In this document: positions 13,621 to 20,944 of the stretch, piece after piece
Layout of the letters: each line of letters starts with the position of its first letter
How positions within the stretch are numbered: the first letter of the stretch is position 1
Origin: Entomortierella parvispora E1425
Lineage: Eukaryota > Fungi > Mortierellomycota
Length of the DNA stretch: 64,000 bases
Direction: 5' to 3'
NCBI GenBank assembly: GCA_020891255.1
Contig: BQFW01000008.1
Coordinates: 248,001 to 312,000, forward strand
Made by a program: the position numbers and the translations under genes
The notes under the pieces: generated by a model
The model's database searches: none
Told to the model about the DNA's origin: nothing
The model's input: the letters and a program-made list of their open reading frames with translations, nothing else

Positions 13621-15871
13621 CCTTTCTGTTTGCAAACGCAAAAAGATCTTGTCAACAGGAACCACTGGAGCATGGAGAACTCACTCTCTCGTCTTCTCTT
13701 CACTTGCTTTTAGTCCCTATCACCACCTATTTCATTCATGGAGATCATGGCGTCCCTGGAATCGTGGAGCGCAGAGCGGCCAGGAATGGAGGCGAAGTCT
13801 GTAACAACCTTTTCTATCTCGGTAAGAGAGAGAAAAAAAAAGAGAAGACATTCCAAGGACAGCCAACTCGTTTTTTTTCGTAGTTGCCGTTGATGTTGAT
13901 ATTGTTCTTGTTTTTGAAACAGTTGTTGAGTTCAGCTTCTGAAGGACTGGGTTACTAAATGGACGACACCCTCTCTCCCCCCTTGTTTTTTTCCCTTGAC
14001 TTCTGATCTCTCTACGTCTCATAGAATCACATGGAGTGATGACGACTTCTCAGTCCGTCAAGGTGGCGTCTCTCAGTGGAACCTACGACAGCACAGTGTA
14101 CGAGGGCGACCTTGAGGACGAAAACTTTGATCAATCTTTGCTTCGACATCATTACACCAAAGCCCAGGTCGATGCACTTGTCAAATCGACCGAAAAGACC
14201 TCCATCATGGATACCTCTAAACATGGCGTCGACATCTTTCTCTCTCATGAATGGCCTGCCGGAATCTTGGAGCGTGTGCCACCCACAGCAGCAGGACCAG
14301 GCACCCCCCAGAATCAGGAAGCGAGCACCTTCTCCCCTGTCGTCTCCAGGGCCGTCTCTCAATTACAACCCAGATACCATTTCGCGGCGCGATCCGGTCA
14401 GTTCTGGGAACGCGCACCGTACAAGAACACGAATGGCGCTGAGCATGCGACAAGGTTCATTGGATTGGGAGAGGTTGGCAACAAGAATAAGCAGCGGTGG
14501 TTCTATGCCTTTAATATCGTGCCCTTGGCCAAGGCCTCGGACGAGGTGTTGGCGGCTTCGATCAATGCTGCAACGACAGACTCGCCCTTGGCGACTTTGG
14601 CCGAGATCAGGAAGCGTCCTCGGACTGAGCAGGTATGAAATGAAATGATTTTTTATTTTATTTTATTTTTTATTTTAATGCTTGATTTGTAGGCATCAGA
14701 ATGCTGACTCTTTTTTTTTTTTTTTTTCTTTTGCATACAGGAAGGAGAGAGTTTCTTTTGGGATCAAAAACGTGTCAGGAATGAGCCTCCACGAGGCTAT
14801 GTCTGTCGTATTTGCAACGTGCCTGGACATTTGATCAAGGACTGCCCAGGTGCCAATGCGAATGCCAGCCCTGGTGTTCCAGAGGGATACGTGTGCAACA
14901 AGTGTCATCAACCCGGTCATTTCATCCGCGACTGTCCATTGATTCAGGAGGAAGCAAAGTCCCGACCGGATTATATCTGTAGGATCTGCAACAAGCCGGG
15001 ACACCGGATTCAGGAATGTCCCGAAAAGGACTCTCATAACTCAAGGTCTGCACGACCTCCCCGCGCCAATGATCCCAACGCTCCCCCACCTCCTTGTTGG
15101 TTCTGTCTTTCCAACCCTGAGGTCGACAAAAACTTGATTGTCTCAATCGGCACCGAGGTGTATATGACGTTGGCCAAGGGTCAGATGCCCGCAACCGAGA
15201 ACCCGACTACGACCTTGATCCCAGGAGGTGGACATGTGATCTTGATCACCATCAACCATTACAGTTCCTTTGCGACCGTGGACCCAGAGGCGAAATCCGA
15301 TCTGGATTCGGAATTGAAACAGTACAAGGATGGATTGAGAAAACTTTACAATTCCAAGGCAGCGGCCTTGGTGGTTTGGGAGTTGAGTCAACGAGGAGCG
15401 CTGCAGCATGCTCATACTCAGGCCATGGCTGTTCCTATGGACAAGATTGAGGCTGTCGAGGCGGCGTTCCAAGAAGAGATCGAGTCGTTTTACATTGCTC
15501 ATTCGTCTTCTTCCTCTCGCCGCTCTGGACCCACGTATGGTCAAAAGTCTCTGCAGGCACTCTCCTCCGAGGAGGGAGGTGAGGCAGAGATGGACAAGGA
15601 ATTGGAGGTCAAGGCAGAATGGCAAGAGACAAAGCCCTCGGGAGGATCAGGGTACTTTAAGGTCGAGTTGCCCTCGGGCAAGAGCTTGTACTGTGTCATC
15701 CCTGTGGATCAGAGGGTCGACATGCAGTTTGGAAGAAATGTCTTGGCCAAGGCCTTGGATACACCCGAGAGAGCCTTCTGGAAGAACTGTGTAAAGTCGC
15801 CAGAGGAGGAACGGAAGGACAGTGTGGCCTTCAAGAATGTTTTCAAGGACCATGACTTTACCCTGCTCTAG
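13262..15871 (+). CDS. CWF19L1: CWF19-like protein 1 (Drn1/CWF19L1): pseudo-metallophosphatase + 3 CCHC knuckles + CwfJ C-terminal domains
   Basis: MTSVKV|LVVGSANG...KHGPFDILFCTGNFF; GVDIFLSHEWP; QPRYHFAA...FWERAPY; CWFCLSNPEVDKNLIVSIGTEVYMTLAKG; HAHTQAMAVP; MQFGRNVLA...WKNC...F...FKDHDFT. Confidence 0.93.
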
Positions 15872-16276
15872 ATCAGACATATTTTTGACATTAATATAAA
15901 TATCTTTTTTTTTTTTTTTTTTTTTTTTTGGCTTTAATGCGGATGGTTGGTATATGGGATGGCACTGCAGCCTCGTGTGACATCTTTGTTTTTGTTTTTC
16001 TTTTCTTTTTTTTTGTCATAAAACGTCTAGCATTGAAAAAAAAAAAAGTAAAAAAAAAAAAAAGGGTGGATGGTGTTGTCTGCAGAGACGGAGAAAGTAT
16101 GAAAGTATGAGAGAAGGAGGATTTTGGTTGTGTACAAGGCGGAAAATTGTTTTACAAACATGCAAAACAAGCATTGAGTGAAGGTTGAAGGATAACAAGG
16201 AGAGAAAATCATCAAGGAGTAAATAGTAGACAATCAAATGTGCAGAGACAGAAAGAGACAGCGACCCCAGGTTTTT

Positions 16277-19200
16277 TTACGTTGGGACATAGGCGCCATC
16301 GCCCTGCCAGACAAGGTTCTGAAGCCAGTAAAACAGAATCTCCACCACCTTGAACCGGCTGGGATGGTCGTCAAAGTTGGTTTCCTGAAGTGCATCAAAA
16401 GAGAGGAAACGCCCATAGTTGAATCCGCCGGCCTGCCCATTGTCCACCAGGAAAACTGAGGTAATCACTCCAAAGAGATAAACGACAATCGTGTACATGG
16501 AAACAAGTGTCACGTTGGCTATCACCTTGCTGTTCTCCTTTTTGCTAAGCACTCTTGTCGTGGGCACTGGTGCGTTGAGGTAGGCTTCACTCGAATTTGC
16601 GTGTCCAGGATTCAAAAGATCAACCACCTCTGCCTGTGTCAGCACGCGAGATTCTAAAAAGTCAAGAGAGGAAGGAGAATTAGACAATCGGACCAAGTCG
16701 AGCATCGTTCTCTAAAAATCCGTCTCGTCAAGATCAAAAACTTACGTTGGACTTTACGTCGGCGAGCACGGTCAGCCTTTTGCTGTTTGGCAGTTGAAGG
16801 TTCTCTACCCAGTACCATCTCGGCAGTGAGCGTGACAGCCAAGGGATGTGATGGCTCCCTTGCCTTGAACAGATCCTCAATCAACTCTGCGTTCGTTCCA
16901 AGCTCCTTGTTCAGCAACATCTCCTTGGACTCCAACGATTGAAGACCAGGGGGGAGTTCACAGTCAACATCGTCAACCTTTGTCTTCAGTGATAGAGCCT
17001 TGCTCAAGATATCTGCCGTTTGAGAAAGGTCGGTGTTGGGGGTATATGTGGAGGGAGATTGAAGTTGTTTCTCGAGTCCGCTTTCTTTGAATCGCTGGCC
17101 TAGATCCCGCATCGATGATCTCTTTAACTTCAAGTTGAACGATGTGCTCTCCTGCAACAGTCGTCGTGCACCCTCATGCGCTAAAAGAACAAGAAATAAA
17201 ACAATAACAGAGTTAGCGACGAGTTGCACTTCCCATTTGGAAATAATTCGATCCATAAGTAGTGTAGGAGAGTCTTACCCGGATCCCACTTTGCGTCAGG
17301 GGATCTTGTCGCAGTTGATTCTGGAGATCTAGCAGCGATCGAGTCTGGGGTCACATCGGAAGGCTCAATTCCAGCTTCAAATCCGGCTGTTTGCAGCTCA
17401 GACATCAATGTCTAAATGTTCAAGATGGATTGGGGTGTCAGTTTTGTTCTCCACTTTGGTATTAGCCGCTGGGCACTGAATTGCACATACCCTTCCTCCT
17501 GTCTGAATGTTTCCATCATAATCCAGAGTAGGGCTTGACAATCCTCCACCAAGATTTTCGACCTCGGTCTTCAGGGATCCAGTGAGTTCAGTTAGACGCA
17601 TCTTTTCAGTGTTCATGAGTTCCAGCTGAAAAGCCATCGCCTCGTTCTTTGTGATCTCTGCTGCCAATCGATCTCGAAGCTCCTCCATTGTTTCTTGATC
17701 CGCGTTAATCTATACAGGTAGTGATGGGTACGGTACATTGGTCAGTTCATGTATCAGAACCCTGGTTCAATATCAGGAGGTTCAGGTTAGTACTCACTCT
17801 GCGAGAGTCTGCCTCAAATGCTGTAAGTCGAATGATCGCGCTATTTAAGGCCTCCTCTTTTTGTCTCAAGGACTCTTTCATGTGCTCGTTTTCCTCTTCA
17901 AGCTCGTCCTTTTGCTTTTTCAGTGTTGCGGCGCTGTTTTTTTGCGTAGAGCTTGTCCGTTCGCTCTTTTCAATCTGCTGCTCCAACTAGAATACGTAAT
18001 GAGAACGAAACATAAGTAAAAGTAAAGCAGCCTAGGTCCTTCATTTCATGGTCCTTGTGGTACGTTACCTCTGCGATCTGCGAAGTCTTGGATTGTTCGG
18101 TATATTTGAGCTCTGAAATCTCGCGCCGCATTGTCTTCAGATCCCGCTTCAGATCGTCAATCTTTTGCTGGTTCTGCTCATCTTCCTTTGTCTGCTCATT
18201 CGCACGTGCTTCGTACTCCAACTCTGTCTGTCGCAGTTTCTTTTGTAGCCTCAGGTAGGCAATCTGTACAGATTCAATCTCAAGGTCGTGGTCGGGCTAA
18301 GCACACGATCAAGAAAACAGGGCGTGTGAGTTTGAAATGCAGAGCTCAAAACAACAGGCATCTCCAGGCAGACACAGGATCAAGAGAGTTGCCAGTTTAA
18401 CTTACAGGCGATTCAGTGTCGAGACCGCAGCCCTCAAACTCTATCTGGCTCGGTTCCCGGATGCTGAATTGGTTATGGCCTTGACCGTTGCCTCTCCAGT
18501 CGCTGTTGTTGAACTTTGACGGTGCAGGGCTTGAGGACTGAGAAGACTCGCCGGAATGAGAGTCATGCTGTGGAGGGGAGAAACAGAGAACAGAAATAGA
18601 AGCATGCGCATGTGACAAGACGTGGTTTAGTGTTAGTCCAGCAGCTCAATGGTATGTGTGGTGCGTGGTGCGTGGTGCGTGGTGGGGGTGTGGCATGGTC
18701 TGCGATCCAAAGTCAAAATATGCATGAGACAGACATCGTGCTGGTGGCAACATGGCTTTGTGTATATTGCTCCCCTTTCCCCAAAACCAAACAGTCGTGA
18801 TGCGAATCATATGTTCCCGTGGCGGATTCAGTCAGGCCATGCTCATGGTGGAAGAAAGGAAGGGAGCAAGCATTTCCTTTTTTCCATTTTCCTTGGTGCC
18901 GTTGTTGTATCAGTCCTCTTCCCATCTGCATCTCTTTTTTTTTCATATTTGGCTTTTGTCTGCTCCCGTCGATAGGAAAGAGAAACAAAAAAAAAGGGCC
19001 GACAACAGAAAAGAGCACCATCTTGAACACAAAAACATGCGTGCAGCCTCTTATTTCGCCATGTGTCAATCCCAAATCAGACGCGGGATCCGCCCCAACG
19101 CTTGGATCTGGCAACAACGGGCGAAAAAGAAAATTGGAAAGAGAAACGAGGGGGCGAGATTTTTTTTTGTTTTTTTTACCTCGTGGAAAGAGTGATGGTG

Positions 19201-19913
19201 ATCGCTGTCGTCAGAGTCGTCTTGAGAGGAGTGGGTGTTTCTCGGATGGCGAACACGGAACTGAGTCGACTCGCTCAGCGAGATCTTGCGGATCGAGTTG
19301 CCCTTTCCTCTCAGTGGAGCACCAGAATGATGTCGAGGATAAAGCCGTGGGGCTTCAAAGGACTCTTGCTCCTGCTCCTGTAGCTCCTGCTCCTGCTCCT
19401 GCTCATAATCATACTCATCCTCTCTCTGGCCTTCCTCTGCCTCCTGCTGGATATCAAATTGGCCCATGGGAGCACGATCGTCACCTCCCAAAAAGGGGGC
19501 GCCCTGTTGCTGGTTCAATGGCTCCGCGTTGAGGGCTGGTCCTTGCAGGAGGCCCAGAAGGTCGCTGAGGTCCTTTTGACTGACCACCGTCCCTTTGACT
19601 GTCGCAATGTAATCGCCGAGTTCCACCCAGCCGTTGGGTGGTAAAAGTGAGGTCCCCTGTTCTTGCTCGACTCTTCGAAGGACCTTCTCCATCAAGTCGG
19701 CCATGATACCAAGGCCAGAAGGGTCAAACTCTGGCCAAATCCTCGCTAAAATATCGTTGGAGGATTCACCATGCTATAGGATGAAGAAAAAGAAGCCCAA
19801 TGAGAAAGAGTTTAAAAAAAAATGCGGTTGGGAAATCACCACACACAGGACGCGGCAATGTTTACCAGAGAGGGTAGCTCCGTGGCCGGCGGTGGGTATG
19901 AAGCGCGCAGCAT
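16277..19913 (-). CDS. Coiled-coil, C-terminally membrane-anchored protein of roughly 800 aa; candidate KASH-type outer nuclear membrane protein
   Basis: About 8 GT-AG-flanked exons: MLRASYPPPATELPSL|HGESSNDILARIWPEFDPSG...; long heptad-rich E/K/Q exons (18260-17280); a single hydrophobic stretch VIANVTLVSMYTIVVYLFGVITSVFLV (about 16445-16525); stop after YVPT at 16277. The gene is well supported, but the KASH call is inference. Confidence 0.65.
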
Positions 19914-20645
19914 TAGAAATGTACAAGTGGAAGGAGCAGAATGGGTTAAAGTGAAGGATAAAGAGATGTAAGCCGAGAAAGGTCGAGGGTTGGGCGAAGA
20001 TGAGCAATGGGGTGGTATTCAAGGGGTGAAGAAGGGTCCGACAATAACGGTGAAAGAGAATGGGTAGAGTCGAGAGCTCTTTGCGAAGGGTGAGAGACGG
20101 CGCAAAGAGATGAGGATCCAATGCAGGAAAGAGACAGCAGAGGCGAAAGAATGAATGTGGCCAATGGTGGACAGGAAGGCAGGAAGGAAAGAAGGAAAGG
20201 AAAGGAAAGGAAAAAAAAAAAAAAAAAAAAAAAAAAAGTGAGAGCAAGGCGGAGACGATGCAGTCGGGAGAGTGAAGGGGGGAAGAGAGATGACGAAGGT
20301 AGGACAAGACAAGATGGAGGAGAAGAGCACGGGTGGAGGAAGGGTGAACGAGGAAGAGAAGGGAAAGAGTCCAAGAGTCCAAGAAGGAACAAAAGACGGC
20401 AAAGAACAGAGGGAAAGACAGACAAGAGAAGGGTGAGCATGCATGGATGGACACATACCCTACATACCATACCATACGCCCGCAAGCAAGGCAAGGGATC
20501 GAAGAAGGGGACCCTGTGTAAATGCACACACGCGCATCTCCAGCACCTCCGCAAGCGCGCCCTCTGCAAGTGCAAAAAGGAACAAGAAGACAGAGGAGGC
20601 GATCCATGGTAGATGTGTGATCGCATGCGCTGTGTTGATCCCGCC

Positions 20646-20676
<31 letters not shown>

Positions 20677-20944
20677 TGGGTGGCTTGGATTTGTTTATTG
20701 CATACACACACACACACACACACACACACCACTGGATCACCCACACTCACTCACACTCACACTCACACACACACCCACACACACCCCCTTTCTGTGCCTG
20801 TGTCCCTCCACCCCACTCTCTCTGTGTCTCTCTCCTCCGGAAGGAATTCACTCTCTCGGTCCATTCATTCATTCATTGAATTGCTTCCTGTTCTTTCCTT
20901 CCCCTTTGCATTGTTATTGTTCCGCTCCCCTCTGTTCGCTCCCC

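Follow-up and report, generated by a model that had tools for sequence, protein, structure and literature searches.

A candidate KASH-type membrane protein with the layout of a dynein adaptor in Entomortierella parvispora and related Mucoromycota

The 64,000-nucleotide stretch of contig BQFW01000008.1 of Entomortierella parvispora E1425 analysed here (contig positions 248,001 to 312,000; "the window", in whose numbering all coordinates are given) carries the gene EMPS_05745, whose product is publicly labelled only as "hypothetical protein". Based on its architecture, we propose that this product may be a KASH-type, tail-anchored protein of the outer nuclear membrane that is built like KASH5, i.e. 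a transmembrane dynein adaptor, and we assign this reading a probability of about 0.5, the same as for SUN binding itself. The sequence-only reading of the same DNA had suggested an undescribed KASH protein composed of an N-terminal helix-loop-helix segment, a disordered linker, a long coiled coil, one transmembrane (TM) helix and a 55-residue tail. Each of these parts was recovered, the relatives lack functional annotation, and a SUN-binding KASH protein is a plausible interpretation that the comparisons below appear to strengthen. Sequence searches were run per exon, the full-length product was represented by the public entry P0072 (EMPS_05745), and relatives were counted at E <= 0.001.

Hydropathy analysis revealed one TM helix near the C-terminus, as only a single 19-residue segment reaches a Kyte-Doolittle score of 1.6 or more (2.06), with the runner-up at 0.62. 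Seven residues of this region are invariant across 29 sequences from three subphyla. Together, the TM helix and the tail form the best-conserved region of the protein, with identities of 76%/64% within Mortierellomycota and ~40%/25% to Mucorales and Glomeromycota, compared with 5-28% for the linkers. A plain membrane anchor would be expected to be less conserved than this. The tail, which is predicted to be luminal, ends in ...YWLQNLVWQGDGAYVPT-stop and contains an amphipathic helix followed by a short unstructured end (Table 1). A feature search of the ESM Atlas with the tail alone returned nothing usable.

To describe the C-terminal end across the family, 82 proteins bearing the TM signature were compiled, and 78 tails were compared for spacing. 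The C-terminus reads VPT in 59/82 and P[ST] in 68/82 of these entries, which are database clusters rather than independent lineages, with Rhizophagus over-represented. In 72 of the 78 tails the chain ends 9-10 residues past a conserved luminal helix, Y-W-[IL]-[EQ]-x-L-[LV]; a peptide that docks by its carboxy-terminus would need such a constant end point. Tail length across the complete family models is 47-62 residues. The sequence-only reading had named strict conservation of a terminal xVPT among orthologues as its check, and variable terminal residues as what would speak against it. This expectation was borne out in part: all complete Glomeromycota models and the majority of Mortierellomycota retain xVPT, and the spacing is kept as described, while the terminal residues do vary in Mucoromycotina and in a few Mortierellomycota (VAT, IPS). 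Actinomortierella ends in LIPS, and the aberrant ends TNTN, KDD, ATI and LSE come from models that are incomplete or wrongly predicted.

According to the rules proposed for putative KASH domains, the sequence should directly follow the TM domain, comprise 9-40 residues, be C-terminal, end in a four-residue pattern and share its motif family-wide (Zhou et al. 2014, PMC4050730). For plant KASH proteins the terminal pattern was later refined to [DTVAMPLIFY][VAPIL]PT (PMC4050730), while a broader description of the canonical motif is a short tail ending in PX (Chen et al. 2019, PMC6504903). In the E. parvispora protein, the TM helix (713-739) is immediately followed by residues 740-794 and then the stop codon, in agreement with the position rule. 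The terminal YVPT conforms to the plant pattern, as the sequence-only reading had recognised in its plant-like -VPT terminus, and also to the looser PX ending. As to the family-wide motif, it is kept in most Mortierellomycota and all complete Glomeromycota models, but is replaced by PLS, TLS, VLA, PVS or MPS in Mucorales and Endogonales and by VAT in three Mortierellomycota.

The N-terminal segment (ILARIWPEFDPSGLG...LSDLLGLL), which is encoded by exon 2, was modelled with AlphaFold2 using an alignment of 26 sequences. Helices were predicted at residues 21-32, 41-55, 62-74 and 82-96, with a predicted local distance difference test score (pLDDT) of 85-91 over residues 21-96. Four helices with a beta-bridge in each loop correspond to the shape of an EF-hand pair; this is the helix-loop-helix segment of the sequence-only reading. 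A family profile of this domain matched secretagogin, calmodulin, calbindin and troponin C in the PDB with E-values of 2e-5 to 6e-4; exon 2 alone found no match among PDB sequences, so that the family profile was needed. Neighbours of the domain in Foldseek and the Atlas were mostly EF-hand pairs, with the weak statistics of such a small domain, and Pfam EF-hand_7 gave sub-threshold, whole-profile matches in two Glomeromycota orthologues. Rhizophagus members are named 'EF-hand domain-containing protein' in UniRef. The first EF loop of Mortierellomycota is one residue shorter than that of Glomeromycota and Mucorales relatives, the Glomeromycota loop reading D-K-T-G-L-G-R-I-V-S-K-D. Because of this shortened loop, the EF-hand pair probably does not bind Ca2+.

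The EF-hand pair is followed by a disordered linker, with only 28% identity within Mortierellomycota compared with 58-76% for the structured parts, and then by a single continuous helix of 188 residues. This helix, which is modelled with high confidence (Table 1) and shares 22-27% identity with Mucorales and Glomeromycota, presumably forms a dimeric coiled coil. Residues 459-526 are disordered in the full-length model. Within this divergent stretch lies the motif T-L-M-S-E-L, of which L482 and E485 are nearly invariant in 32 sequences from three subphyla; the alignment variants include SLMSEL, TLFTE, SLEAE, LRTELF and LQTELF. The Spindly motif reads S-L-F-A-E-V, and in human Spindly S256 and F258 are the critical residues. 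By pattern match, the family motif, S-L-M-S-E-L or T-L-F-T-E-L, resembles it and is thus a candidate dynactin pointed-end motif of the Spindly type. Combined, the EF-hand pair, the 188-residue helix and the conserved [ST]L-x-x-E-L located 24 residues further on would give the cytoplasmic part the complete layout of a dynein activating adaptor of the EF-hand class.

Among the known systems, KASH5 (CCDC155) appears to be the closest architectural analogue. In KASH5, a meiotic LINC component and dynein activating adaptor of vertebrates, the EF-hands are followed by a coiled coil with its end at residue 349, a putative Spindly motif (371-376), a TM helix and a KASH peptide; the EF-hands are calcium-insensitive and bind the dynein light intermediate chain (PMC10071310, PMC9242646, PMC12581424). 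The same order is seen here, with an EF-hand pair, a presumed coiled coil of ~190 residues, an L-x-x-E motif, a single TM helix and a luminal peptide ending in P-T. The spacing also agrees, since in the family protein the helix stops at residue 458 and the motif begins at 481, compared with 349 and 371 in KASH5 (~22-24 residues). In contrast to KASH5, the family protein separates its EF-hands from the coiled coil by a disordered linker of 170 residues, and the coiled coil from the TM helix by ~250 additional residues, and its 55-residue tail ends in VPT instead of PPPX; at the sequence level the Pfam families KASH_CCD, EF-hand_9 and KASH give no match. In a protein language-model comparison of P0013, the closest full-length orthologue, the named neighbours included KASH5 (0.85), Rab11-FIP4 (0.79-0.80) and MRVI1 (0.78), while the top neighbour was an unnamed Basidiomycota cluster (cosine 0.96, 202/256 features); we take these similarities as leads only.

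The soluble EF-hand dynein adaptors Rab11-FIP3/4, CRACR2a and ninein also combine an EF-hand pair with a long coiled coil, but they engage cargo via Rab-binding or other C-terminal domains, whereas the family protein is predicted to be membrane-anchored with a luminal tail. The plant WIP and SINE1-5 proteins share a tail placed straight after the TM helix and a terminal pattern that fits YVPT, VPT being the end of 59/82 proteins of the present family. However, their tails span only 9-16 residues, compared with 55 residues including a conserved helix here, and their cytoplasmic domains are unrelated and without sequence similarity. Kms1/Kms2 of fission yeast and Mps2 are likewise fungal coiled-coil proteins with a C-terminal TM helix, whose luminal end binds SUN proteins. 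In budding yeast, the luminal C-terminus of Mps2 binds the SUN protein Mps3 without a canonical KASH motif (PMC6504903), so a fungal SUN partner can deviate from the canonical KASH definition. As for sequence similarity to Kms1/Kms2, the phmmer and word searches with the present family gave no match outside Mucoromycota sensu lato at E <= 0.001. The sequence-only reading had pointed to EF-hand-like N-termini in Kms1/Kms2; a literature search found no paper naming Kms1, Kms2 and EF-hand together, and KASH5 is the better analogue, so that the family protein would be KASH5-like rather than Kms-like.

On this basis the following mechanism can be proposed. The single C-terminal TM helix would be placed in the endoplasmic reticulum (ER) or outer nuclear membrane, and the conserved 55-residue tail would enter the perinuclear lumen, where its free ...VPT carboxy-terminus, at a constant spacing from the conserved luminal helix, would dock on a SUN-domain trimer. 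Such docking would keep the protein at the nuclear envelope or the spindle pole body (SPB). Facing the cytoplasm, the EF-hand pair, which is probably calcium-insensitive, may bind the dynein light intermediate chain, the ~190-residue coiled coil may lie along dynein-dynactin, and the SL-x-S-E-L motif past the coiled coil may touch the pointed end of dynactin. In this way nuclei, or meiotic telomeres, would be coupled to minus-end-directed microtubule movement in coenocytic hyphae.

Several observations weigh against a KASH-type protein. As the sequence-only reading had already remarked, the tail is longer than canonical KASH tails, and its 55 residues exceed the 9-40 allowed by the length rule. 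It contains no cysteine, which makes the SUN-KASH disulfide of mammals impossible. The terminal residues vary among Mucoromycotina (IPLS in Dichotomocladium, VTLS in Absidia, AVLA in Hesseltinella, LPVS in Benjaminiella and LMPS in Jimgerdemannia), and three Mortierellomycota of the Haplosporangium / M. polycephala group end in VAT. Sequence homology to known KASH families was not detected: Pfam KASH (PF10541) was silent on exon 9 (E <= 1) and on nine full-length orthologues (E <= 0.1), KASH_CCD (PF14662) and EF-hand_9 (PF14658) were unmatched in the Pfam scans of exons and orthologues, and a tail profile searched against the PDB found no KASH peptide, its sole match, to ATP synthase subunit a, being due to chance similarity of TM segments. 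The phmmer matches of the tail among 1.84 billion proteins came, where named, from Mucoromycota sensu lato only. Finally, the assignment of the Spindly motif relies on a pattern of 4-6 residues.

Some of these points would also fit a tail-anchored motor adaptor or tether with EF-hands and a coiled coil that resides on the ER at large or on a different organelle, without retention at the nuclear envelope by SUN proteins; its conserved tail would bind another luminal or membrane partner, or lie on the membrane as an amphipathic helix. The tail length beyond the KASH rule, the variable terminal residues in Mucoromycotina and the lack of similarity to KASH families agree with such a protein, as does the hydrophobic luminal helix VVEILFYWLQNLVW, which is possibly membrane-associated. 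In contrast, the fixed spacing of 9-10 residues to a free C-terminus together with P[ST] in 68/82 is what a carboxy-terminal docking peptide would be expected to show. Nor are we aware of another system described to date in which an adaptor with EF-hands and a coiled coil carries a conserved luminal peptide at its C-terminus, which counts against this alternative, and we consider it rather unlikely.

Less probable still is a structural membrane component of the SPB or a nuclear microtubule-organising centre, similar to Mps2 or Kms2, which would bind SUN proteins in a non-canonical manner and serve SPB insertion or anchoring instead of dynein recruitment. The binding of Mps2 to Mps3 by a luminal C-terminus lacking the canonical motif (PMC6504903) and the coupling of Sad1 to the SPB by Kms2 (PMC2733748) provide precedents, and a coiled coil followed by a TM helix is compatible with this role. 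However, the EF-hand pair, the 188-residue helix and the motif past the coiled coil fit dynein activating adaptors more specifically, and the two roles can coexist, as Kms1 binds both Sad1 and dynein (PMC2733748). A golgin- or SLMAP-like tail-anchored tether, in which -VPT would be lineage-specific and without a docking role, shares the common layout of a long coiled coil and a C-terminal TM helix, but it is very improbable, given that the N-terminal domains of those families (GRAB/GRIP, FHA) were not found in Pfam scans of the exons and nine orthologues and that, in our expectation, a 55-residue luminal sequence would not be kept over such evolutionary depth; the weak sub-threshold Pfam coiled-coil matches (Dynamitin, Sec20, HIP1) are uninformative in this respect.

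The family is restricted to Mucoromycota in the broad sense, within reach of the searches performed here. When the last exon was compared by phmmer with a set of 1.84 billion representative proteins, 32 matches were obtained, located at the extreme C-terminus in the full-length members, which are proteins of 530-770 residues. Members were found in Mortierellomycota (Entomortierella, Podila, Linnemannia, Dissophora, Mortierella, Haplosporangium, Actinomortierella, Modicella and Lunasporangiospora), in at least 13 genera of Glomeromycota, from Paraglomus and Geosiphon through Rhizophagus and Gigaspora, in Mucorales (Dichotomocladium, Hesseltinella, Benjaminiella and Absidia) and in Endogonales (Jimgerdemannia). 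The family is present in every Glomeromycota genus sampled and seems to be single-copy where seen. No Dikarya protein was among the matches, and no profile search aimed at Dikarya was made. A region-restricted search with the Geosiphon tail returned Glomeromycota only, a metagenome scan with the tail profile returned Mortierellomycota and Glomeromycota only, and a word-index search with the full-length family alignment returned Mortierellomycota only, its 8000 candidates being saturated by coiled-coil words. Pfam and NCBIfam scans of each exon gave nothing meaningful, only sub-threshold coiled-coil noise, and a literature search found no description of the family.

Several public entries of the family carry doubtful names or models. 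The orthologues P0061 (Rhizophagus clarus) and P0065 (Gigaspora margarita) are labelled 'annexin family protein'. Pfam gave no annexin match in nine other full-length orthologues, and the name is presumably an annotation error and a risk to automated transfer. The public model of Linnemannia exigua (BGZ95_009631, 149 residues; L001:3212-6553) covers only the last exon(s), and the upstream matches to exons 2-6 and 8 are unannotated in a stretch that includes 10 Ns. Other entries are truncated or have a wrong last exon; P0061 ends in TNTN, and P0083-P0085 lack the TM helix.

The gene model starts with an ATG at 19913 and ends with a TAA at 16279-16277 on the minus strand, and all nine exon translations are present, unaltered and in order, in the public 794-residue protein. 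All eight introns have GT..AG boundaries; seven of them measure 79-109 nt and intron 2 measures 612 nt. In the Linnemannia exigua contig L001 (JAAAIL010000583.1) exons 2-6, 8 and 9 were matched, and in the metagenome relative L003 all nine, with protein identities of 79-96%. Partial matches were obtained in L002 (exons 3-6, 8 and 9), L004 (8 and 9) and L005 (3-9), with the exon order kept in L001, L002, L003 and L005. These results confirm that the gene is real and conserved, while its expression and splice junctions are inferred from the public annotation and the cross-species conservation of the exons. The coordinates of all features are collected in Table 1.

Table 1. Positions in the window of the gene and of the parts of its product.
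Feature	Position	Strand	Remarks
Whole gene	19913..16277	minus	Nine exons, 794 codons plus stop; GT..AG introns, in frame
Exons	19913-19866, 19773-19180, 18567-18406, 18296-18069, 17986-17798, 17709-17491, 17411-17279, 17180-16746, 16653-16277	minus	
EF-hand pair, residues 21-92	19546..19761	minus	Four helices and two loop beta-bridges (predicted)
Disordered acidic/Ser-rich linker, residues 95-267	18409..19539	minus	pLDDT below 50; spans intron 2 (19179-18568)
Continuous helix, residues 271-458 (188 residues)	17557..18290	minus	Single helix in AlphaFold2, pLDDT 89-96; spans introns 4 and 5
Motif T-L-M-S-E-L, residues 481-486	17394..17411	minus	24 residues past the presumed coiled coil, within a divergent disordered stretch
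Two shorter predicted helices, residues 527-554 and 602-630	16864..17175	minus	Contain the conserved blocks DDVDC-LP and L-x-x-ELG-x-Q-x-LIE
Basic patch RARRRK, residues 662-667	16753..16770	minus	~45 residues ahead of the TM helix; R662 nearly invariant
Single TM helix, residues 713-739	16445..16525	minus	Invariant Y..T...Y..G..TS.F pattern; AlphaFold2 helix 707-739
55-residue tail (predicted luminal), residues 740-794	16280..16444	minus	Net charge -4, no Cys
Amphipathic tail helix, residues 769-785	16307-16357	minus	Followed by nine unstructured residues
Terminal Y-V-P-T	16280-16291	minus	Stop at 16277-16279

Intron 2 (18568-19179, minus strand) is six to seven times as long as the other introns (79-109 nt). 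It shows 77% nucleotide identity across 588 nt in L003, and in Linnemannia L001 the matches to exons 2 and 3 lie ~500 nt apart. An Rfam scan of the locus including this intron gave matches at chance level only. A small nucleolar RNA or a hidden exon in the intron is unsupported. The annotated orthologue P0013 aligns over the exon 2/3 junction with nothing extra. The intron could contain a regulatory element or an unannotated RNA.

Downstream of the gene, at 14819-15871 on the plus strand, lies a convergent neighbour with CCHC zinc knuckles and CwfJ C-terminal domains, resembling the Cwf19/Drn1-like splicing/debranching cofactors. The same convergent orientation is found in L002 and L004, so the gene pair is syntenic across Mortierellomycota. 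The segment between the 3' ends of both genes, 15959-16080, is A/T-rich and produced sub-threshold Rfam matches when both strands were scanned (Phe_leader, 32 bits vs 55; MIR7504, 26 bits vs 83), which are probably a low-complexity artefact. Immediately upstream of the start codon, the ~0.8 kb at about 19950-20750 are of low complexity and differ strongly in composition between the strands, with a GC skew of 0.48 and an AT skew of 0.63 over positions 20000-20499. The segment contains long pyrimidine/purine tracts as well as microsatellites of the (TG)n/(CA)n type, and all long open reading frames there are artefacts of this composition. This region is the probable promoter or 5' untranslated region.

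KASH proteins evolve so rapidly that homology searches usually miss them, and in the literature examined fungal KASH or KASH-like proteins are documented only in yeasts (Kms1/2, Mps2/Csm4). The classic set of nuclear-migration genes of filamentous fungi comprises dynein components and includes no named nuclear-envelope receptor. The present family, which is uncharacterised, seems to be single-copy and shares the layout of KASH5, provides a concrete, testable candidate for this receptor. Its carriers grow as coenocytic hyphae with many nuclei and comprise the oleaginous Mortierella, the partly pathogenic Mucorales and the arbuscular mycorrhizal fungi, among others.

A more far-reaching possibility, which we regard as clearly unlikely, is that this family shares with vertebrate KASH5 a single opisthokont ancestor, a dynein adaptor that was membrane-anchored, contained EF-hands and a coiled coil, and was held at the nuclear envelope by SUN proteins. 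In that case the transmembrane dynein adaptor would be older than the split of fungi and animals, with survivors in Mucoromycota and perhaps also among Basidiomycota (the cluster at cosine 0.96), and the VPT/PT ending in common with plant KASH proteins would represent an ancestral SUN-docking peptide. The family would then also provide the motor link for long-range nuclear traffic in arbuscular mycorrhizal hyphae. If the KASH-type assignment itself is confirmed, a plant-like VPT end on a long, helix-containing tail would prove compatible with SUN binding, and the family would inform the question of an ancient or a convergent origin of transmembrane EF-hand dynein adaptors.

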